Shown here in pieces: positions 1,130 to 64,000 of a DNA stretch of 64,000 bases. Below the pieces are notes generated by a model that saw nothing but the letters and a program-made list of their open reading frames with translations, did not search any database and was not told the origin of the DNA. Made by a program: the position numbers and the translations under genes. Numbering within the stretch: position 1 is the first letter of the stretch; each line of letters opens with the position of its first letter. This DNA is from Octopus sinensis (taxonomy: Eukaryota), in NCBI RefSeq assembly GCF_006345805.1, contig NC_042997.1, positions 107,694,001 to 107,758,000 on the forward strand. Reading direction: 5' to 3'.

Positions 1130-1539
1130 CTGAAAATAAATAACAAGAAAATGAATTGTTTCACTGATTCAGATGGTATTTTTCTTTACTCTCTAAACTC
1201 TCATTTGCCAATTATTGATCTGAAACAAACATACACAACATCTTGAATAATTCCAAACATAGTCATTCTTTAATATGAACTATATAGTTGAACAACAGAA
1301 GCCATAGAAAACAGGTAAACCCCATGTTTTTAGCAGATTCTGAAGTGATGAAGTTATGCCTAAGGTATCTTCATCACTTCTTTCTCCCAGTCTTGGAGGA
1401 ATTCAAAATGGTCATTAATGTTACTACAGGTATGAAAAACAGTAACAGATCAACCAACTGTCTGACAAGCCTTTGTTCATGTGGACTAACTTACTTTCTA
1501 ATTCTGTCAGTCATATACCAATAATATACCGGAATAATA

Positions 1540-3212
1540 ATAATAATCAAAACATTGTGTACAGTGCTCAGGTGCACTACAACTCATCTAAAGTGTATGT
1601 ATAATCAGGTGTAGTTTCGGTGGATTTCGGAAAGCATGAGGGCCTTAAAGGATGCAGTGTCATGGCAGTCAACAACTGACGCAGGCAGTTTGTTCCATGC
1701 TTCAGCAACTCTGAGCGTGAAAAAATGTTTCCAAAAGTCATGGGAGCTGTGTTGTTTTCTGACTTTGTAGGCATGTCCATGTGTGTTAGACACATGAAGA
1801 TCAAAAAGGTGTTCAGTGTTGTTGTTGGTGAGGTGGTTGATAACTTTGTGGGTGTTTACCAAGTCCATCGCCAGACGCCGGAGCTTCAGTGAATCCATGC
1901 CCAGGGAAACAAAGCGCTCAGAGTATGGTAGGTGTCTGATGGAGGGTATGCGTTTGGTTGCACGTCTCTGAACAGATTCCAGGAGGTCAATGTTCTGAGC
2001 AAGATAGGGCTTCCAAACTGATGATGTGAATTCCAAGTGTGGTCGTACCATGGCTGTATACAGTTTTAAATAGATGGCTGGAGAGCGGCTAACAAAAGTC
2101 TTGCTGAGTGATGCCAAGACACCCTCGGCCTTCTTGACAATTTCAGAGATATGCTTTGTCCAACGCAAATCACTGCTGACAGTGATGCCTAGGTCACGCT
2201 CGCAAGAGGATTTCTTGATATCAGTGTTGTGGAGGGAGTATGTGGACGCAGGGTTTTTCTCCCAAAATGCATGGTGGTACACTTGTCCACAGCCAGTTTC
2301 AGTTGCCAGTCTGTGATCCATTGCTGCATTGTGTCCAGGTCTGATTGCAGGAAAGAGCTGTAGACAACAGGATCTGTCCTCTTGATTTCAAGGTACAGCT
2401 TGATGTCGTCTGTATATTTCAATACGGTGGCATTCTTTAAACTGGCATCTATGTCATTAATGTATGCCACAAACAAGAGGGGACCAAGGACAGATCCCTG
2501 TGGTACACCCGATGACATCTCATATGGTGTAGAATGCTGTCCTAGAACTGTGACTACCTCCTTTCGGCTGAGAATGAAGGATTTCAACCAGTTAAAAATA
2601 TCATCCCTCACACCCATTGCAAAGAGTTTCACCATAAGCCTTTTGTGTGGCACAGAGTTGAAAGCCTTAGCAAAGTCAAGGTAGACAACATCCACCCATG
2701 AGCCACTGTCAGTGATCTGAGTAATGTCCTCAAGGAACTCGACAAGCTGATCACTGCAGCTGGAGTTAGGGACAAATCCATATTGTGAGGGTCGCATGAG
2801 ACTGTGACAGCTCCAGAAGTTCCAAAGTGTTTCTCTGACACACGATTCCTTCAGTTTTGCAATACAGCTAGTGAGACTGACTGGGCGATAGTTGACAGGT
2901 GATGTGCGGTCGCCCTTTTTGAACAGAGGAATGACACTGGCAGTTTTCCACTGCTCCAGAGTAGCACCATTGTTGAGACAGTGCTGGAAAAAAATAGAAA
3001 GCTGGTGTAAAAGGAAGTACTTGCCACGTTTGAGAAGCAGGTATGCAACTCCATCAAGACCAGTGGAGGCATAGTTGCGCTTATTTTGAAGGTGACGTTG
3101 CAGCATTGCAGGTGTAAATTCCATAGTTATTATGGAATTTGCTGTTAGAGATGGTGAAGATGGTACATTTTGACTTTCAACAGTGAATATGTTTGCATAG
3201 CACTCGGCAATG
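1540..3212 (-). mobile_element. CR1/L2-group LINE, 5'-truncated RT region with frameshift, in ORC6 intron 4
   Basis: ORFs 2189-3124 and 1605-2321 carry YLDFAKAFNSVPH, SGVPQGSVLGPLLF, KYTDD (YADD variant) and LESVQRRATK. No endonuclease seen. Confidence 0.9.
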
Positions 3213-3569
3213 AGTTACATCCCAAGTAACTTAGCAATTCGGCAAAAAGAGAGCGATAGAATATGATGTATCATCATCGTTTAACATTCACTTTCCGTGC
3301 TAGCACAGGTTGGACAGTTCAACCAGGATCTGGGAAGCCAGGAGGCTGCACCAGGCTCCAATCTGATCTGGCAGAGTTTCTACAGCCGGATGCCCTTCCT
3401 AACGCCAACCACTTTGAGAGTATAGTGGGTGCGTTGTACGTGCGACCGCAGGCTTTAAAATAATAAGTACCGGGATTCAATTCATTCAACTGAAAATTCT
3501 TCAAAGAGATGCCCCAGCATGGCCACACTAATAATTGAAAAAAGATAAAAGCTGATGCAAGCAACTTAC

Positions 3570-3659
3570 AGACAAGCAGCTTCAACTGCAGCAGCCAAGA
3601 AAAGTGTTGATCTGTAGTCAACGTCAGCACAACCATTCTTTACTATTTCTGACTGGTAC
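3570..3659 (-). CDS. ORC6: ORC6 coding exon 4 (YQSEIVKNGCADVDYRSTLFLAAAVEAAC-L)
   Basis: tttcag acceptor and gtaagt donor. 90 nt, in frame. Matches ORC6 DLDLSRPLFTSAALLSAC. Confidence 0.9.
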
Positions 3660-4232
3660 CTGAAATAAAAGGCATGAAAACAGTTTAGCTTTTGTGGAGC
3701 TTTGTTTTGGCGAGTGTTTTGCATCCATTATTGGCGCCAGCAAGTCTGCAATTCTCAATTCCAAACATTGGCAGAGAATTCTATTCTTACTGGCAACAAT
3801 CTCTCCATTTCAATGAAGGCATGGAAAGGAGATTAAAAAACAACTTAGCATCAAGCCACATTACTTCATTCTGAATGAATCTAAATGAGATATTTATATA
3901 TATATATATTGTATATGCATCATCGGATACCCTCCCACTCTTATCTACCATTCACTACATCCATTCCTCATCTTTTGCTCAGCCATGCCTTTTTCAAACT
4001 TCTATCAACCCACAAATATGGTTCTTCTGTCCCCACTTCTACTCACAGGGCAAGTCTACCAAGGTGAACATTCAACTAAACTAGATTAAGTATAAACATA
4101 CAATCCGACCATACCACGTTAAACGATGATGATGACGACAAGCTAAGCACAATTTAAATAGGATAAGCTTTGCTTGTGTGTATGAAGGGGTACCCAAAAG
4201 TAAGTGGAAACATTTTCTATGGGACAAGCCCA

Positions 4233-5008
4233 ATGTTGGAGATTAAGAATATGCAAAAATTTAAATTTCACCCCCACCATTTAAAATTTTGATTACTTTA
4301 AAGAGATTGTAGTGAATTGATGAACATACGCAAATTGAAACTAAATATGATAAAAACATTAAAGTGAAAAGAATTCACCTTTTTCTTGCGTTTGCCTTAA
4401 AATAATAATTAAATGTAAATTCACCATTTTATGAGAAACTAACATTATTTACATTTGACGGATATTTGTCCTCATCTTGTTTGTTGTTAAGACAATGTTT
4501 CAGCTGATATACCCTCCAGCCTTCATGGAAAATATTAACATGATTAATAATTAATGTTATAAACTTTAATAAGGGGGTCAATTTCACCCCCCCCCCAATT
4601 TTAAATTTTGAACTTTTTCATCTATTTATCCCTATCTGTTTATTTATAAAATATATTTGCCAACTGAATGTGGCGGTCCTATAGAGGATGGTGTTACTGT
4701 TGTTTTTAGCCCCAGGAAGACATTCATATCTATCTCTTTATACACATATCTATATGCTTATTGAATTTAAAATTTTGAAAACATGGTTTCTTGCATATTC
4801 AAAAAACAGGAGAAACACAGGAAAAAAGATTTCGAAAACAGTTAAAAATTTTTAATTGGGAGGCGGGGGTTAAAAAATTTTGTTTTTGCATATTCGTAAT
4901 CTCCGACATCTAAAACGTAGGAATCCGAAATAATTTTTTCAAGACAAAAAAAAAAAAATAGAAAAAAAAAGCATTTTTTCAGAAAAGGTGCGATTCTGCA
5001 GTAGCCCC
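4233..5008. mobile_element. Old DNA-transposon remnant with internal inverted repeats
   Basis: atgttggagattaagaatatgcaaaaa (about 4233-4259) is inverted to tttttgcatattcgtaatctccgacat (about 4885-4911). Family unassigned. Confidence 0.4.
4450..4526 (-). ncRNA. Degenerate, 5'-truncated hammerhead-ribozyme-like remnant (probably Penelope-type repeat)
   Basis: Minus strand reads AUGA-AGGCUG-GAGGGUAUAU-CAGCU-GAAAC...CCGUC. The CUG of CUGAUGA is missing. Confidence 0.5.
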
Positions 5009-5270
5009 TGGAGATCATGCTTCACCAGTTGAAACCATATCAGTTAATGACTAATATTTCAATTATATTATTTCCTCAAGAGAGACAACTCCAAATATGT
5101 TTCAATAGTATAACCTCAACAGTGACAGTATTTGCGTAACTAGTGATGACAAATCTCTAAGATGCATCATAATGAACATAGGATGGCATGAAAAAAACCC
5201 CAAAAAAACAATAGTATTTACTTTTCTAATACTTAAAAAAAAAGACCATACACAAGTATTTACTATTTAC

Positions 5271-5434
5271 CTGTTGAGTGTTTCCTGAGCCACATCAGCG
5301 ATGTCTGTACACCCAAACTGTACGCAAAGTTCTCGAATGGAGGATTTTTGTTGTTCTCCCAACAAACTTTCAACAGCTTTGAAAGAATTTAAATATGCCT
5401 TTTTATTCAAGCCTGACAGTTTTATGGCCATCGA
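5271..5434 (-). CDS. ORC6: ORC6 coding exon 3 (SMAIKLSGLNKKAYLNSFKAVESLLGEQQKSSIRELCVQFGCTDIADVAQETLN-R)
   Basis: AG/GT bounded, 164 nt. IKLSGLNK and IRELCVQFGC are ORC6 hallmarks (human IKLSGLNK, IRDLAVQFSC). Confidence 0.95.
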
Positions 5435-6122
5435 CTGGATTAAAAAAGAGAAAAAAATTTTCTGTCGTATAAATTACACACACAATTTTAAAACTAAAAG
5501 AGTTGTTCAACCCTGAGTCCCAACTTTACACATTTAATTAAGTCAACATATCAGGACTTCGTGGATAATAAAGATTAAATAGTCAAAACTATTGAAAAGG
5601 TTGCAAGACAACGAAAATTTTAAGAAAATAAAAAAATAAAATAGTGGAAATTTTACCGGTGAGTGTGTTAGATTATAAGGCACAAAAAGAAAATGACTCT
5701 CCCCAGACACAACAAAGATTAAATGCAAATAATTTTCTGGGGCAGAGAGAGTAGAAGGAATGCAACACATTCTTAGAACATCACAGAGTTCGCTTATAAT
5801 GGGAGTGATGCACGGGAGGATTGAAAAAGAGGGGGAGGGCGAATAAACTGATCCACCACCATGGCGAAGAAGCAAGTAATTACACCAATGTAAAATATTC
5901 TCAACAAAGGACGGGGCTGATATTTATCAGCTCAAGGACCCTCGAGTCGGTGGTGCTTATGGCATTATTTGATCTTAAAATCTCTGATTATAGATTATCT
6001 TTCCAGCTCCTAGAATGGATGGACGTCTGTATCCATTTGTGTTGTATGTCGCCAACAAAATATATGATTTACAAAAATGAAGAAAAATATAGAAGAGATG
6101 AATATCATTTCGATTAACCTAC

Positions 6123-6270
6123 CTTGTCCGATTCTTTAAGATGACATCCAAGTTTGTTGGCTGCCAGATCCAAAGCTATGACACATTTACAAGACTGGCT
6201 TAATCGAAGAGCTGACAAAGAAATTACATTTGGACCGCTTTCCATCTTGCGACAGATTTCATTGGCATAT
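6123..6270 (-). CDS. ORC6: ORC6 coding exon 2 (YANEICRKMESGPNVISLSALRLSQSCKCVIALDLAANKLGCHLKESDK)
   Basis: ttccag acceptor and gtaggt donor. 148 nt, frame continuous with exons 1 and 3. CVIALDLAA matches ORC6 AVMCLDLAA. Confidence 0.9.
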
Positions 6271-6402
6271 CTGGAATAAGATTTATCGTTTTCTTACATT
6301 CAAATATATTAATACATTTACGTTAGAAGCTAAATAAGAAATAAATGAATATATTTTAACGTCAACAATTTCGATATATATATATAAAAAAGATATATTT
6401 AC

Positions 6403-6455
6403 TTGAGGACTGAAACACTTGTTAATCCGAGTTTTGTTCCCAAGACTTGAAGCAT
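6403..6455 (-). CDS. ORC6: ORC6 coding exon 1 (MLQVLGTKLGLTSVSVL-K)
   Basis: ATG at 6455-6453 and GT donor (gtaaat) after 6403. 53 nt, phase 2. The LGL motif matches the ORC6 N-terminus (human RLGLAEPDMLR). Confidence 0.8.
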
Positions 6456-6732
6456 TTTGTCAGAGATTTGAACAAAAATGTTTCCCCGCTACAACACAGC
6501 TGTTCACCTCTAACACATTAGATTTCCCGCGAAATATTGAATGATGGGAAAAAAATTAATATATTTTTATTATTTAATAAATATCTGTTGGATAATAATT
6601 TTTTTTAGATAAATATAGCTATCTTATGAAAATCACCCAATCCAAATGTTTTATTTTATTTTCGATTCTATTCCAAACCCGACTGGTGATATAATCTCGT
6701 CCTGCCGAGTGTACTAATCACATGATTTCATC
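6456..6732. promoter_or_regulatory. Bidirectional ORC6/VPS35 promoter and 5' UTRs, with a double E2F-type site TTTCCCGCGAAA (6523-6534) and CCAAT (6637-6641)
   Basis: Lies between divergent start codons in a locally CpG-retaining region (about 5.8-7.6 kb). Motifs read directly; function is inferred. Confidence 0.7.
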
Positions 6733-44657
<37,925 letters not shown>

Positions 44658-54249: not shown

Positions 54250-54841
54250 AATTATATAACATAATGAATATAATTTCCCCTATTCTCACATCAGATTAAA
54301 ATATTGTTATTAAAAGTAAAAATAGCCAAATAATAGTAAACATCTCTTTAACTCACAAATCAAAATGTATACTGTATATATAAATATAAATACATGCATA
54401 CACATACATACATATATGTATGTAAGTATGTGTATACATGATATATAAATATATAAACATATATATAAAATTACAGGCACATATATATGCATGTATATGA
54501 ATACATGCATATGCATATATATATATATATATATATATAATTATAACAATGTTCGGTAAAAACTTATACAAAAAGCTTTTTTATATATAATTCTTTTCCA
54601 TACCGGAAAACTACTAGGTGAAATTTGTTAATTTTATTAAATTAATAATTTTTTCACCCTATATCTGTAATAATAAATAAATATATATATATTACTTATT
54701 ATATTATATTTATCATTCATTTTATACTTTTTGAAAAAAAAAATTATTATTATTATATATATTACTTGTTATTTATGTATTGGTTATGTCTATCACTAAG
54801 TTGCATAATAGTGGTTTTATCTCTAATTTATATTTTATATA

Positions 54842-54890
<49 letters not shown>

Positions 54891-54968
54891 TAATCTACAA
54901 CTATAATATAATATTTATGTATATATATAATACATATATATTATAATAATCTACATAAAATTTTATAC

Positions 54969-55005
<37 letters not shown>

Positions 55006-55020
55006 TATATGCATATAAAT
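54250..55020. repeat. (TA)n/(TATG)n low-complexity tract upstream of SPS
   Basis: Several long TA runs, for example about 54835-54886 and 54970-54996. Confidence 0.9.
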
Positions 55021-55200
55021 TTCTTTTTCTTTTCTTTCTTCGGTGCTTGCAGCTATTTATGTCCCGTTCGGTGCACCATAGTATAAAGCCTCTGTCCCAG
55101 TCGCACGACGAGCGAGTCCCTCTCCATCCGGGTCTTTCTCTCACCATTCTCTCTCGACGACGCCATAACGTGGCTCACAGAAACGAACAAGCAATTATGT
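55020..55200 (+). promoter_or_regulatory. Probable SPS promoter/5' UTR
   Basis: Abrupt change from a (TA)n tract to CpG-rich sequence. TATA-like gtataaag at 55081-55088, directly upstream of the coding exon. Confidence 0.5.
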
Positions 55201-55288: not shown

Positions 55289-55525
55289 ATGTTCAGGAAG
55301 CCTGCCCGCCGGAGGAACCGCGAGATCTGTCTATGCGGCGACCTTTCGATCCTGTCGCTCACGATTTGGATCCGAAATTCCGACTCACCAAATATGCTGA
55401 CCTGAAGGGATGAGGGTGTAAGGTCCCCCAGGAAGCTCTGCTCAAGCTTCTTGAGGGACTACAACAGGACAGCAGTGCCCAGGAGTCCGAACACTTCCAG
55501 TACATCGCCAGTGTTCCTCGAATAG
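55289..55525 (+). CDS. SEPHS2: Selenophosphate synthetase (SPS/SelD, SEPHS2-like) exon with in-frame UGA; later exons not found in window
   Basis: From ATG 55333: [73 protein letters not shown](U)GCKVPQ is the SPS active-site motif. cctttcag acceptor, gtaaga donor, 193 nt from this ATG to the donor. Confidence 0.95.
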
Positions 55526-58500
55526 GTAAGAAATGGCTTCACCAATTTTTTTTATTCTATCGGAAACGAGACATTGCTGCTACTGTCTCGGCATTAACCA
55601 CCAAATCGGCTTTTATTTCGCCGATCTGGATGAAGTAAAGAACCCAGCTTATTTCTTTTAGTCGCAAATAATTTTCCTAAGTTTATTTTATGATTTTGGG
55701 GTAGATTTTGGTGTGTACCTTGTGTTTGTGAGACATAAATAGGTTTTTTAATGTGACTCCCTTTCGATGCTCTCCTCTCCATAATGGCGGCTCTCAGCGC
55801 GTGGTGGCAGGTGTGTGTGTGTGTGCGTACGTGCGTGTGTGTTTGTCTGTGTCTGCAGTATACGTCGGCAGGTGTGTTTGTGTATGTCTGCAGTATACGT
55901 TGTTGGCAGGTGTGTGTGTGTCAACAACTTGTTGCAACAACATCCCCCCCACCCCCAGTTGCTCGTCTTTTCTTCTAAAACACTTATTTAAAAACATCTT
56001 TTATTATTATTCAGTCACACTGTTTCTTATTGTTATTCCTGACCATCAATCCCGACTCAACACAAATTCTATCGTCTTTCATTTTTCAATTTACATCAAA
56101 AGATTTCCTACAAAAGAATTTTCCCTTTTCTGTTTTTCCCGGCGACTTCTTTCAACACAAATTTTCTCAACAGAACCAACAAATTAACTCAACATTTTCC
56201 CGTTTATTTTGCATTTTAATTAAGAAAAAAAAACGCAATTTTTTTCCTTCGGGCTCAGATTTTTATTTAAATTTCATTAAATTTTAACAAAGCTCGTTAT
56301 TTTTCTTTCTCGTTTTAAAAATATATTTGCCAAAGACTTTTATTTAGATTAAATTCATTTCTTTAATTTTCCTATTAATTACAAATTTATTTCAATTTAA
56401 AAATTTGCTGTATTCTTTCTTAGACCAACCTAGTTGGCTCGTATTATTTAATTTTAACATATTTCTACTTAAATTATTTAATTAATTCAGTATATCTGAG
56501 GGAAGATTTAATTTAAAACCAATTATTTCCAATTAAAAACAAAATATGCACATTGTTTCGCTTTAATGTTTTCCTCTTAATTTTGACAACAATCTGTAAG
56601 TTAGGGTTGTTTTTGTTTTATAACAATATGAAATATTTGGTTCATGTTTGCTTATTAATATTTCTTTTATTTCATTTCCCTCTTCATATTCTTCCCTCTT
56701 TTCTTGGTGCAATTTTTCAATTCTAGACTTACGTCATCGTAAACTTGGCATAAATTAGCCAACTTTTAAAAGACATTATTTCAACGTTGCTGCAATTTTC
56801 TACATTTTTAATTACTTATGTAAAAAAAATTGACATCTTTTGCTTACAATTCTATTAAAACACCTATTCGAAGTTAATAATTTTACTATCTTGCTTGGCC
56901 ATATTCGATGCAAGTCTACCAAATTATCGATTTTCATCTATTCATAAATAAAATCGAAAATTTTTTTTATAAAACAAGCAAAAAAAGTCTTTGAGATATT
57001 ATTATGAGATTCCTGAAAGAGACAATGCGATAGGGAAGAGGGACCAAACGGTGTAAAAAGTTGATGGTGGGAAGTGTGACGAAAGATATGAAAACGGAAG
57101 CCGGTGGTTGTTAAGGGATAACCTGCCTGTAGGGGCAGGGACTAGTGACTTCTATAATCCAGGGAAAGATGATTGTGGTAATAGAGGAGGCAGATGACTA
57201 CAGGTGTTGTCAGTTAACAATAAACCACTCTACCTAGGACTTAATGAACTGTAAAAATTCTTTGGTAGAGTACCACACCTTTGTAGCTTGGCTGTTGCTA
57301 AGAGAATTGAGTGTTAGGAATTTAGCATGCAGGTAGGGTGTCCCTCACAGCTTGGCTCATAACATAATCCTAAAAGTGGAGTTTGAAACCAGCTGTGGGA
57401 ACTGTAATGGTTTAGTTCTTCATGGATCAAGATGTCTAAGATTTAGAGATGAAAATTCCTGATATGGAGGCAAAAGCCGAAAATTAGGAAGGCTGAAAGT
57501 AAATCGAGTAAAGAGAAAAATATTATAAAAGTAGAACTCTGCTGTCAAGATGTCAGCGTACAACTGCTGTATCTCAACTGGCCTACTTCATATATACGAG
57601 GAATGTGGGGTTACAAGTGGAGGAGGCAAACTCGTGTGGTTTTGTGGTAGATGCACAGCTGTAGTTAGCTGTGAGAGGATGCAAGGAATATATTCCATCC
57701 AATGCTTCTGTTAGTTAAGTTACCAAATAAAATGTAGAGAAGTGTTGTGAAAGTAGTCAGAAGAAAACCAGGCTGGAAAAGTGCAGGGAGCCATTATTTG
57801 TGAGGGTAAAGGTTAGATTGGTATAATTCTTGTGTATGAAGTGTGATGGATGGTTGTGGAACGTGGCCGTTGAGTGTGGGATGTGTAGAAGCTGGGAAGA
57901 AACGAGGTGAACATGTTTTGTTGGATGTGTATGGATAATGGGACAAAAGTGGTTGGTCTGAGAGGAAGGAAGTTACAGAAAATTAAGATTGAGGAAATAA
58001 TAGAGAGAAGTGAAGGCTGAATTTTAGAAAAGAGATAAAGGAGTGTGGTGGGATGCTGTGCTGGAGAAGAGTTGTTTACCTGGTAAAACTGGAGATAAGG
58101 ATGATACAGTGTAGATCTCAAGGGAAATGTTTCTAATGTTGGGTTAGGACCAACAGATTTCATTGTGTCATTTGTAGAAATGGGACATTGTTATGTTCTA
58201 ATTGGTGATACCTAAAGAATGGATATCTTTTCTACTTAAGAATTGGATAGTTTTATGGAATGTTTTAGTATTGGAACAACAAACTGCATTATAAAACCTG
58301 ATACCAATTAAAAACAGTTACAAAATTTATGTTAATTTAGAAAGAAAATTTATTACAAGAAATTTTTTCTTCAGCTTCTTTTTGTAAAATGTCACTTTAA
58401 ACAGGGTGTTTGTGGCATTATCGTTTATTCAAGCTCAGAACTGACTGACTGCCATGTTCAATGCTTTATTTCATTCATAACAGCAGTGACAACTATTTCT

Positions 58501-59169
58501 CTTAAATTCCGATTAGTGCTTATTTTCTTTACCCTTATTGACACCACCCTGCATGATACCATCTTCAGTTGTATTCTATAAATCCACCGCTTATATGTCC
58601 TTGGGACCCCTGATGTATGGAATTTTGCCGATTGAGTATATGCCCTCAACATGTACTATTTTCATGGATTAATTATATGCTCTGAGAGGTGTAGTTTTGT
58701 CTATGGTTAAGAGGTACACTTCCCAAACATGATTTTGGGTTCAGTTGTTCTATACAACACGTTGGCTAATTGTCTTCTGCTATAACCCTGGATCGATCAA
58801 ATCTTTGCAAGTTAGCTTGGAAGGCAGAAACTGAAAAGACCATGCTGTGTGTGTGTGTGTATATCAGTGCATCCCCCAAAATCCCTGAGCTGCAAACAAT
58901 GATTTTGTTGTCATTTCTCCTCTCACCAAATCGTTGGCTGGTTTTGCTCCTGAGATGATATGTAAAATTAAGGGGCCCCCTGCTTGAAAAAATGGGTAAT
59001 GGTTAATAAGAGGAAGCAAATGCAGCTGTAAAACAAAGCCTCAAAAATATGTTCATCTAACCCATTGTAGCATATAAAAACAAATGACGACTTCGTAGTG
59101 TTTTGCTAATAATATTATAATGTTTAATACTTACAATTTCTCAACCATCATTTTTATATCCGTGTCTTG

Positions 59170-60170
59170 CTCCTCTCTGAATACTCTCACTCATCGTATC
59201 ATTTCTGCAAGGTTGTCTTGAGGTTGTTCTTCTGTACTTTGTCTCATGCCTTCTGGGGTCTCCCTTTTTCGTGAGTTCCATCCACTGTGAGCGATCGGCA
59301 CTTCTTTATAGAGCTGTCGACATCCATCTGTATCACATGACCAAACCAATGCAGTCTTCTCTCTTGCACACTGCATCTAATTCCTCTCATGCCTGACATT
59401 TCTCTCAACACACCAGCACTCTGTTGCATATGTACTCTTACATTACACATCCAACAGAGCATACCAGCCTCATTCCTCTCTAGCCTTTGCATGTCTTCTG
59501 CATTCAGGGCCCACATCTCACTATCATGTAGAATTGTTTGTATACATCATACAATCTTCCTTTCACTTGGAGGGAGATAACAGAGGTAAAAGATCTCGGA
59601 ATTTTCTCTATCCTATTCTTATTCTAATGATTACACTTTCCATGCATCACCCCCCCCCCGCTAATTAGGTTCCCTAGGTAACAAATTATCCACTACCTCT
59701 AAACAGTCTTTGGGGCTCTTGAAAACATCAATTTCCTGAGAATCTGTAATTTTTATGACTCCTGTGCATCTTCCACATACAAACATTACTTTCTCTGACA
59801 ATCTTCCTATTATTCCACTGCACCTCTTGTGCTGAGTACAGTGGGTACACCATAATGGAATTCCTACTTACACCTTTCCTACAAATTGAGCAAGGCCATT
59901 CTCCTGATGGGGGTAGAGTCTGTTTTCTTAATTTCTAGAACAGTAGTCTTTGATATGTTAACCATAAGGCCAGATTCCAGGTTTTACTTCCACACTTGGA
60001 ATATCTCTGATATGGAATCCACTATGAGGGCAAGATCATCAGCATATAGTAGTTCCCAGCGACTACTAGTCTTGAATTCCTCTGTTATGGTCTAGAGGAC
60101 AGTGATGAAAAGGAGGGAACTAGGGATAGAACCTTGATGAACCCCTACCTGTGCACCAAATTCTTCACAG
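59170..60170 (-). mobile_element. RTE LINE RT fragment in the SPS intron
   Basis: ORF 59244-59516 (MQRLERNEAGMLCWMCNV...RRLHWFGHV). A YADDLAL-type segment lies near 60040. Confidence 0.8.
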
Positions 60171-62784
60171 TACTTGTGATTAACTCCCACCTTACTGACA
60201 GTGCCAGTTGTTGCGAGGTTAAAAGAATAATAGGAGAGAGAGAGACAGTGTGAAGGAGACTTAGAAAAATAGAGATGGTGGTGGATATGTTGGGAAATAG
60301 CTTTTGGGTGCAGTGGGAGAGAATTTCATCAGAATGTGAAAGAAAATGGTTAGGTGGGATAGAGATAGGAGTGGCACAGTGGGGGAAGGGGTTATAATAG
60401 ATAGGTGAGGGCATTGGGAGAGATAGGGGATAAAAGAAGTGTTAAGGATGGATGGAGTATAGTAGAGAGGAGGCAGCATTGCTGGAGGAAGATGAGGAAT
60501 GGAGGTGGTCCTGGGGAGGGGGAAGGCGATTATGGTTGTTGAATAATATCAAGTGATGAGTTTAGGGAGAAGCTTGATAGGGGTAGGGCAGAGCTGCTTT
60601 GCACATACAAACATTTACCAAAGTGGTTTTAGGATATCAATTCTGTTGTGGTGGGTGGGTTTTCTTGAGCACAACAAGGCTCCAGATATCTCAGTCCTTT
60701 GTCATCTCCTCTTTAAGGCTTTGTATCTCTTAATACTTTCTCCATAACTTCCTTCTTTGAGTGATTGGTACTTCTTTATGCAGCTATCCTCTTCCATCTG
60801 TATCACATGTGCTGTATTTTCTCCTGCACACTGCATCTGATTCCTTTCTAATCCACTCTGCAGGGTGGTTGGTGTTAGGAAGGGCATCCAACCATAAAAA
60901 CCCTGCCAAAACAGTCACAGTAGTCTGCTGCAGGTTTCTGCCTGGCCGGCTCCTGTCAAACTGTCCAACCCATAGCATGGAAGGTGGATGTTAAATGATG
61001 ATGATGTTGATATATAATATGCAATTCATCAGGGGACTAGGTATGTTCTATGAGGGCTCAGTTTGGTTTACCACTAAAACTCCAGTTTGAACATAAGAAA
61101 TGTGTTTTAGTTAGAAATATAGGAAGGAAATGGTTGAAGTCCTAATTGTTTCAAAATTCTTCTTTTCCATGTTTTTGTCAATCCTAACCTGTTTTCAAGC
61201 CAGGTAATGTCTTCTCATTGTCAGACATTTTTCATAGAACACTAAAAACAGACATTGTTCCTCTGACACAGTGGCTCATTTACAACCATCACATGCTAAC
61301 CTTGGATCGTAGAGTGACCCACTGTTCTTGAGGAGACCTATTGAGTCAAGTACGTCAACATTAACATCAAAATAAAAGTCAAATGGAAATTGTATTTAAG
61401 ATACCCGTGCCGGTGACAGGTAAAAAGCACCGTCTGAACGTGGCAGATGCCAGCATTGCCTGACTGGCGTCTGTGTCGGTGACACGTAAAAGCACCAACC
61501 GATTGTTTGCGAGCCTCCTCTGGCCCCTGTGCTGGTGGCATGTAAAAAGCACCCACTACACTCACGGAGTGGTTGACGTTAGGAAGGGCATCCAGCTGTA
61601 GAAACACTTCCAGATCAGACTGAAGCCTTGTGCAGCCTCCTGGCTTCCCAGACCCGGTCGAACCGTCCAACCCATGCTAGCATGGAAAACGGACGTTAAA
61701 CGATGATGATGACATGAAATCAGACAATGTTATAAAGAAACACACACACACCATCATATATGACTGGTTTCTTTTATACTACCAAATCAACTTACAAGGC
61801 TTTGTGACTGTGTGCGTGGATTTGGTTATTATGAACTCCCACCAATTGATGGACAAAATATGTTTATTCCAAAAATCTTCAAACCCAATCAAGAAAACTT
61901 TGGATAAATTAAACAGTTTTTTTTGTATCTTTTTATTGTCACAATCAACAAATCTTAATGTAATTAAGCATTAGGAAGGGTATCCTGTTGTAGAAACTAT
62001 GGCAAAAACAGGCAATGGAGCCTGCTGTGGCTCCCAGCCATACCAGCTCCTGTCAGATCATGTAACCCATGACAACATAGAAGATTATAAAATGATGGTG
62101 GTGATGATAATGATGATAATTAGATCTGAATGAAATTCAACAAAGACAGCAATATTGATAACCTGACCTATTTTAATCTAATAATAGTTTTAGCAATAAA
62201 AGTAACTATTTACAACAAAAAAAAAAAACCCAACTAATTTTTAAAATTGTCATGCCAGAAATTTTAATGAGGTCAGAATAGTGTCACCAACACAGTTTCT
62301 TTTAATTAGAGAGATTTTATTCATTGGCTATGAGTTTAAAAATGAAAGGTGGGGATCAGAGATAGAGAGACATTGGTGTCTGTCTTTAAAAAGTTTCAAC
62401 AGATAAACAAACTCTATACTTGAAAATATTTATTATATATTCACGTAAGAAAAATTCATGTTTAAAGAATTAATAAAGTTTACCATCATCAAAATCATTC
62501 CAAATTCTAATGAAAACATGGCTACCCCTGCTTGTCCTAGTCATCCACCTCTCTACCGTCTCAAATAGTCAAGGGAGTTTTCCTTCTTTTCCTTTTTCTC
62601 CCCTATTTTGTAAGCTACTCAGCAACTGCACAAGCACTAGTGGCACGAAACAGCTGTTAGAGACTCTATATCTATATTTTCTATCTAAATTGTCTTTTTC
62701 AAGTGATGCCAAATGGTTTACCTTTTTTTCATTTTTACTTAATTCTAAAATAATTGTGAATATAGATTTATAAATATAGTTTTC

Positions 62785-63120
62785 CTCATCATCATACCTC
62801 CGTTCTCCATGCTAGCATGGGTTGGACGGTTCGACTGTGGTCTGGGAAGCCAGAAGGCTGCACCAGGCTCTAGTCTGATCTGGCAGCGTTTCTACAGCTG
62901 GATGCCCTTCCTAACGCCAACCACTCCGAGAGTGTAGTGGGTGCTTTTTACGTGCCGCCGGCACAGGTGCCAGGTGAGGCTAGCAACGGTCACGATCGGA
63001 TTGGTGCTTTTTACGTGCCACTGGCACGGAAGCCAGTCAAGGCGGCGCTGGCATCGGCCACGTTCGGGTGGTGCTTTTTACGTGCCACTGGCACGGAAGC
63101 CAGTCTAGGCAGCGCTGAAA
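62785..63120 (-). repeat. Young copy of the abundant (GAT)n-tailed RTE 3'-UTR repeat (more than 20 copies in the window, both orientations)
   Basis: Shared core ctacagctggatgcccttcctaacgccaaccactc. CpGs are retained in this copy. Internal tandem units of about 65 bp. Confidence 0.9.
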
Positions 63121-64000
63121 ACTATATATGTATGTGTGTGTGGTTTTTGTGACACCGCAAGAAGTTCTTAAATCTATTCAGCAAAGTTTCTAAGTCTCCT
63201 GTAAATTTGAACTGAAAAATTGGTCAAAAAACAATATATATTTATTTACTACCCACAAGGGGCTAAACACAGGGAACAAACAAGTACAGACAAACAGATT
63301 AAGTCGATTACATCGACCCCAGTGCATAACTGGTACTTAATTTATCGACCCTGAAAGGATGAAAGGCAAAGTTGACCTCGGCGGAATTTGAACCCAGAAC
63401 GTAGCGACAGATGAAATACGGCTATGCATTTCGCACGGCGTGCTAACGTTTCTGCTTCTGGGTTTGTCTAGCATATACTGTCAGAAATGTGCCTGGCCCT
63501 TATATCCCATTATACCATCTTCAATTGATAGTTGCCTCTTTGTTTTATGATATTTTCGTATCTGCTATAAACATATGGAAGTGATAATTTCAGATCACAT
63601 CATACCTTAGGCCATGCTGTGGTTTTTCCCTGTATGAACTACTTGACTGGCCCTTGTGCCGGTGGCATGTAAAAGCACCCACTACACTCTCGGAGAGGTT
63701 GGTGTTAGGAAGGGTGTCCAGCTGTAGAAATTTTGCTATTTCAGATTGAGCCTGGTGCAGCCTCTGGCTCATCATTTCTCAGTCAAACTGTCCAACCCAT
63801 GCCAACATGGAAAGCGGACGTTAAACAATGATGATGATGCTGCCACCACTGTCGCCACCGCCCGTAATAGTACTCAATACTTAGCTTGCTAATCTCGCAA
63901 ATATTGATACCCTATTTTGTGGGTTTGTCTAGCATATTCTGTCAGAAATGTGCCTGGCCCTTATATCCCATTATGCCATCTTCAATTGATAGTCACCTCT

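Follow-up and report, generated by a model that had tools for sequence, protein, structure and literature searches.

The locus described here raises the question of how an in-frame UGA in a gene for selenophosphate synthetase (SPS) is read, that is, as selenocysteine (Sec), as another amino acid by readthrough or as a plain stop. Throughout, the window denotes the whole 64-kb stretch of DNA that was analyzed. SPS2 is found in every genome that makes selenoproteins (Mariotti 2015, PMC4561486). In insects, according to the same study, the hexanucleotide GGG-UG[C/U] is ultraconserved 3′ of the UGA in the SPS1-UGA genes, which lack a SECIS, but is missing from SPS2 and SPS1-Arg genes; in metazoans other than insects, it occurs here and there in SPS2-Sec genes without an SPS1 paralogue. 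For such genes, Sec decoding alongside non-Sec readthrough was proposed, aided by a stem-loop (SRE/HRE), and the SPS1-UGA class, as described there, is insect-specific (Mariotti 2015, PMC4561486). An earlier, sequence-only reading of the window had taken the exon for part of a Sec-encoding SPS2 gene; its statements on SPS2, on the hexamer and on insect SPS1-UGA genes agree with the published account, and its interpretation restates the model of Mariotti 2015.

The window contains the first coding exon of an SPS gene

The sequence-only reading had described an SPS exon with an in-frame UGA that is followed by GGG-TGT, by 37 open codons and by a good splice donor, and all of these elements were found in place (Table 1). 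The ATG at 55333 is the first in-frame ATG 3′ of an in-frame stop at 55084, with no other in-frame ATG between the two. It opens a run of 26 sense codons, the start included, that leads to the TGA, and the frame stays open for 37 codons beyond it. The coding part of the exon ends in phase 1, and its last base is the first base of a Gly codon. The exon boundary, …PR[IL]G / IGMD…, is common to the genomic relatives L001, L003 and L005, and cDNA relatives read across it.

Residues 4-65 of human SEPHS1 (PDB 3FD5/9HJT) align to the exon across the stop (E 1.5e-13, ~50% identity), and Thr29 of SEPHS1, which occupies the Sec/Cys site, lies opposite the TGA. Positions 1-36 of the NCBIfam selD profile also align to the exon; the score of exon 1 by itself is 20.9 bits (cut-off 125), and a full-length relative (L028) reaches 263.6 bits and contains both the AIRS and the AIRS_C domains. 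A protein search returned 34 exon-1 homologues (best E 1.9e-27, 76-80% identity), which stop at …LKG or have 'W' at the site, apart from one with Arg. The N-terminal Gly-rich loop of the SelD/SPS family, …DLKG-[UGA]-GCKVPQ…, is present with its catalytic Sec/Cys and Lys, as is the feature expected of a eukaryotic selenoprotein gene, namely an in-frame UGA at the Sec/Cys site that is flanked on either side by conserved coding sequence. The exon does not belong to an SPS1 paralogue with Thr, Arg, Gly or Leu at this site, since the site codon is TGA and not a sense codon. Judging from these alignments, the match to SPS is not due to chance, and 55333-55525 (+) can be assigned as the first coding exon of an octopus SPS/SelD gene.

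We searched the window by tblastn with a SEPHS1 probe whose N-terminus agrees with the PDB alignment. Exon 1 was the only match; neither a further SPS exon nor an alternative first exon was found in the 64 kb, and intron 1 is therefore placed at more than 8.4 kb. One could read the exon as dead or orphaned, a pseudogene remnant in which the UGA is a plain stop, as there is no downstream SPS exon within 8.5 kb. However, introns in this gene reach about 5 kb among relatives, and first introns are often the longest; the ATG, the open frame, the donor, the UGA context and a hairpin of full strength are all intact, and the UGA is an ancestral state common to dozens of relatives rather than a new lesion. 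We consider a dead exon extremely improbable.

The SPS exon lies between long (TA)n and (GT)n microsatellites (54840-55010 and 55810-55930), one just upstream of the presumed promoter/5′ UTR and the other inside intron 1.

Table 1. Features of the SPS locus, SECIS elements of a springtail used as a control and interspersed repeats
Feature	Position	Strand	Basis or remark
SPS exon 1, coding part	55333..55525	+	SEPHS1 alignment; 34 homologous exon-1 ORFs
In-frame UGA at the catalytic Sec/Cys position, codon 27	55411..55413	+	opposite SEPHS1 Thr29; TGA in 33 distinct relatives
GGG-UGU hexanucleotide directly 3′ of the UGA	55414..55419	+	GGGTG[T/C] in 33/33 TGA-type relatives
Putative recoding hairpin, SRE-type	55422..55460	+	fold and comparison across relatives
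Intron 1 splice donor GTAAGA, phase 1	55526..55531	+	same boundary in relatives
Intron 1 (start), >8.4 kb	55526..64000	+	only exon 1 found by tblastn
SECIS, Orchesella cincta GCA_001718145.1 (L010)	2713-2758	-	just downstream of one of two inverted SPS copies
SECIS, Orchesella cincta GCA_001718145.1 (L010)	5273-5319	+	just downstream of the other inverted SPS copy
Repeat copy	15015-15401	-	pseudo-ORF motifs
Repeat copy	27266-27889	+	pseudo-ORF motifs
Repeat copy	61338-61670	-	pseudo-ORF motifs
Repeat copy	62809-63152	+	pseudo-ORF motifs
Repeat copy	63590-63775	-	pseudo-ORF motifs
Further repeat copies	5543-5875, 32812-33162, 35700-36221		pseudo-ORF motifs

Host and genomic neighbourhood

The window contains a complete VPS35 gene at 12768-44654 (+) with at least 16 coding exons. 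Over the full length of the gene model, identity to VPS35 of Octopus bimaculoides is 96%; other molluscs come next, with at most 82%. Furthermore, O. bimaculoides chromosome CM046601.1 (L011) is collinear with window positions 186-54272, about 54 kb, at 85-93% nucleotide identity; the fetched O. bimaculoides locus stops at the latter position, ~1 kb before the SPS exon. Because of the VPS35 identity and this collinearity, we take the host to be an octopus, and the sequence indicates one that is related to, but other than, O. bimaculoides. Since the host is an octopus, the insect SPS1-UGA class is excluded on taxonomic grounds, and a gene of the SPS2-Sec class is to be expected.

An insect SPS1-UGA gene had been our first idea, since termite-gut and ant-garden metagenomes had supplied many of the homologues; it was dropped on the finding of an octopus VPS35 in the window.

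The gene order in the window is ORC6 (-), VPS35 (+) and the SPS exon. The partial ORC6 gene, at 186-~9600 (-), is placed by the annotation of the collinear O. bimaculoides sequence (1358-9721) alone. We found no VPS35 synteny in the loci of the SPS relatives, no cephalopod SPS protein among the 120 C-terminal homologues listed, and no match in a database look-up of an ORF near the end of the window. Three reverse transcriptase fragments, which were taken as non-LTR, lie at 2192-3124 (-), 14087-14428 (+) and 29813-30154 (-) (Pfam RVT_1, E 6e-36, 3e-10 and 1e-3, respectively), two of them within VPS35 introns. Two families of short interspersed repeats appear as recurring pseudo-ORF motifs without a Pfam match, and are probably SINE-like (Table 1).

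UGA context and hairpin in UGA-type and Arg-type relatives

A scan of JGI metagenome contigs yielded 80 further loci with the homologous exon, and we compared 33 distinct sequences with TGA at the site with 22 that have an Arg codon there. GGGTG[T/C] follows the site codon in all 33 TGA-type sequences, compared with 7 of the 22 Arg-type sequences, and the codon before the site is GGA in 33/33 and 8/22, respectively. Thus GGA-UGA-GGG-UG[U/C] is invariant wherever the UGA is kept, and both this context and the hairpin described below decay where the codon became Arg. The comparison of 33 UGA genes with 22 Arg genes amounts to a clean natural experiment, in which hexamer and hairpin are both linked to UGA decoding.

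In the window, the hairpin starts 8 nt after the UGA, and its arms (55422-55437 and 55445-55460) enclose the loop CUGCUCA (55438-55444) with 16 pairs, 15 of them standard and one a C/A mismatch. We computed the folding energy of the 44-nt region for both types. The values range from –18.3 to –27.1 kcal/mol in TGA-type sequences, with –23.4 kcal/mol for the window, and from –2.7 to –18.6 kcal/mol in Arg-type sequences of equal GC content (0.51 versus 0.52), although the sequences that give the difference its significance (Mann-Whitney test, P = 5e-10) are not phylogenetically independent. Among 17 sequences in the register of the window, 91.5% of cells pair, compared with at most 64.0% when the 3′ partner was slid by 1-3 columns, and one compensatory pair, U-A to C-G, was observed. 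The evidence for the hairpin is comparative, because the fold of the single window sequence is unexceptional against shuffled sequences (z –1.0 to –1.9).

In L006 and L007 (ENA ERZ25084518; site at 10118), the codon is Arg (CGA), yet GGGTGT and most of the hairpin are kept (–14 to –19 kcal/mol). Their exon falls within the clade of the window and is, around the site, nearly identical to that of L033-35, which carry candidate SECIS elements; this may reflect a recent UGA-to-Arg conversion or a duplication outside the arthropod-like clade defined below. The Arg exon is present on both contigs; in L006, exon 3 is partially repeated in tandem (11818-12305). Metagenome protein catalogues also include exon-1 ORFs of animal SPS genes in which Trp occupies the Sec site (P0001-P0018), and here Trp is evidently TGA read under genetic code 4 by the gene caller on eukaryotic contigs.

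The octopus exon has the combination known from insect SPS1-UGA genes, GGG-UG[C/U] after the UGA and a strong adjacent hairpin. The same UGA, hexamer and hairpin are shared by relatives in which a SECIS was detected and by others in which none was (see below), and consequently the local context cannot decide between Sec and readthrough. The two might also be combined: following the hypothesis of Mariotti 2015, SECIS-dependent Sec insertion could be accompanied by appreciable SECIS-independent readthrough that yields a non-Sec isoform with an 'SPS1' function. The hexamer, which is redundant with respect to coding, and the preceding GGA are invariant in all UGA-bearing genes, the presence of the hexamer is inversely correlated with that of an SPS1 paralogue in published data (Mariotti 2015, PMC4561486), and the window holds no alternative non-Sec first exon. 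However, the hexamer and the hairpin could equally serve Sec insertion alone. We regard dual decoding as a possible but tentative addition to the Sec reading, with which it is compatible.

Search for SECIS elements

The sequence-only reading had expected the SECIS outside the window; in line with this, and in addition to the tblastn result, no SECIS was found in the 64 kb by Rfam, by our own scanner (0 candidates) or by a SECIS covariance model, the 3′ UTR of the gene being outside the window. We applied the same three approaches to the relatives. Rfam 15 reported no match to a SECIS family in any locus, even at E values up to 10 on short stretches with convincing, conserved SECIS elements, and was also silent on the region of L031 with a strong AUGA…AA…GA hairpin. 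The Rfam negatives are uninformative, because regions in which a conserved SECIS was later found gave nothing either.

The scanner searches for a UGA…AA…GA core with helix II and helix I. It detected compact elements, their core halves 37-39 nt apart, in the 3′ UTRs of L002, L003, L081, L031, L028 and L033-35; among the controls, 11 kb of Arg-type 3′ UTRs gave no candidate and 38 kb of shuffled sequence gave two. The published SECIS core, UGAN/KGAW (PMC3753652), fits all of these candidates except that of L031. The element shared by L002 and L003 is the sole conserved block between their 3′ UTRs. In the full-length cDNAs L028 and L033-35, compact UGAN…AA…KGAW elements lie 0.9-1.3 kb past the stop, and none appeared in five shuffles of each UTR.

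A covariance model was then built from the three homologous elements of L002, L003 and L081, the divergent candidates not being alignable by MAFFT. This hexapod SPS SECIS model detected a clear SECIS beside both SPS copies of the springtail Orchesella cincta (36.4 bits, E 1e-6; 22.7 bits, E 0.008), which serves as a positive control in a named taxon, and it also matched an element in the marine cDNA L037. After refinement, and with filters off, the model aligned end to end with the candidates of L033-35 (10.5 bits) and L028 (9.5 bits) at E values of about 0.6-1.3, and we treat these elements as weakly scored SECIS candidates. L013, which belongs to the clade of the window, has no SECIS-like element in 1.2 kb of 3′ UTR, and no SECIS was detectable in termite-gut cDNAs (L040-L045) or marine cDNAs (L016-L027) that have the same UGA, hexamer and hairpin.

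The two SPS proteins of Orchesella cincta are annotated as truncated (166 and 218 aa), a typical mis-annotation of selenoproteins.

Placement of the exon among full-length relatives

Two clades emerge among the full-length relatives, one that is arthropod-like and a second with the signature …HFQY…PR[IL]G (L001, L005, L013, L028 and L033-35). Within the arthropod-like clade, SECIS-less UGA genes are mixed among Arg genes, and the SECIS-bearing genes are basal. In the second clade, SECIS-like elements are present in two of three cDNA lineages. In a ranking by identity, the six best matches of exon 1 of the window (79-84%) all belong to the second clade, and its mean exon-1 identity is 79% to this clade versus 71% to the others. 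The exon is thus placed outside the insect SPS1 lineage, as its host is an octopus and it groups with the clade that is not arthropod-like.

The UGA-type cDNAs without a detectable SECIS (L016-L027 and L040-L045) cluster with the Arg-type sequences L029/L030, L049 and L059-L091. Both kinds, UGA-type without SECIS and Arg-type, occur in marine metatranscriptomes, where 3′ UTRs may be truncated. An origin of these cDNAs in marine crustaceans would make the SPS1-UGA/Arg lineage older than insects.

These placements bear on the reading in which the octopus gene is of the SECIS-less SPS1-UGA type known from Hymenoptera, its UGA being read through without Sec by means of the hexamer and the hairpin, and any selenophosphate synthesis being left to another gene. 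The UGA context and the hairpin do match those of relatives without a detectable SECIS (L040-L045 and L016-L027), and the window holds no SECIS. However, the missing SECIS is expected, as the 3′ UTR lies outside the window; the SPS1-UGA class as described is confined to insects, whereas this gene is from an octopus; the exon belongs with the clade whose cDNAs carry SECIS-like elements; and a mollusc that makes selenoproteins needs an SPS2. We know of no second octopus SPS gene. Rich selenoproteomes are indicated for molluscs, with 32 genes cited for the oyster in PMC8557442. We consider such a SECIS-less gene unlikely.

For the claim of a Sec-encoding SPS2, the conserved UGA at the Sec/Cys site, the octopus host and the SECIS-like 3′ UTR elements in the closest full-length relatives are favourable, whereas the local context on which the sequence-only reading relied leaves Sec and readthrough undecided when taken alone. 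We conclude that the exon is probably the first of an octopus gene orthologous to metazoan SPS2/SEPHS2, a predicted selenoprotein gene with recoding signals close to its UGA, and that this UGA is most likely decoded as Sec.

DISCUSSION

All parts of the ancestral recoding package, namely the UGA, its invariant flanks and the hairpin, are retained in the octopus SPS gene. From what is established for Sec insertion, the hairpin and the 3′ context would weaken termination at the UGA, and a SECIS in the 3′ UTR, outside the window, would recruit SBP2, eEFSec and Sec-tRNA, so that Sec is inserted. The product would be the enzyme that supplies Sec synthesis with selenophosphate. The hexamer and the hairpin may also permit some SECIS-independent readthrough, which would give the non-Sec isoform with 'SPS1' function hypothesized by Mariotti 2015.

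Gene finders that stop at the UGA miss or truncate this gene, and its relatives in public protein catalogues are truncated or translated with Trp. An SPS gene in an octopus is nevertheless a well-described kind of gene and holds little surprise for specialists.

Coleoid cephalopods recode their mRNAs massively by A-to-I editing. A non-Sec isoform might arise by editing of UGA to UGI, which is read as UGG (Trp), in the structured region near the hairpin; alternatively, an SPS1-UGA-type gene without a SECIS might exist in octopus, outside the insects. We hold these more unusual outcomes to be very unlikely, although, if UGA-to-UGI editing were true, one codon would act as a three-way switch between stop, Sec and Trp.

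Among known systems, the octopus exon resembles the unduplicated metazoan SPS2/SEPHS2 genes with the hexamer, such as that of Capitella (Mariotti 2015), in having the UGA within the K-G-U-G-C-K loop, the hexamer, an SRE stem-loop and a host that is neither insect nor vertebrate. It differs from these in that the octopus gene is known here from exon 1 alone. Judging by the lineage labels in the supplementary script of Mariotti 2015, cephalopods are absent from the mollusc classes in that set. With the SPS1-UGA genes of Hymenoptera and Paraneoptera, the exon shares the GGA-UGA-GGG-UGU context and a strong hairpin just downstream, but that class is defined in insects, lacks a SECIS and has an HRE, a three-stem 'clover', whereas the octopus exon falls in a different clade. 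The N-terminal loop is the same in human SEPHS1 and SEPHS2, and the layout of exons and domains in the relatives of the octopus exon is also the same. SEPHS1, however, carries Thr there, in contrast to the UGA of the octopus exon, and does not belong to the selenoproteins; SEPHS2 has Sec, but most vertebrate SPS2 genes have lost the hexamer (Mariotti 2015, PMC4561486). Finally, the SRE of SEPN1/SELENON, as cited in PMC4561486 (Howard et al. 2005), likewise forms a stem-loop that follows a Sec-UGA after a few nucleotides, and promotes recoding with or without a SECIS. It belongs to a different gene and has no sequence homology to the octopus hairpin, for which conservation alone suggests a comparable function in recoding.
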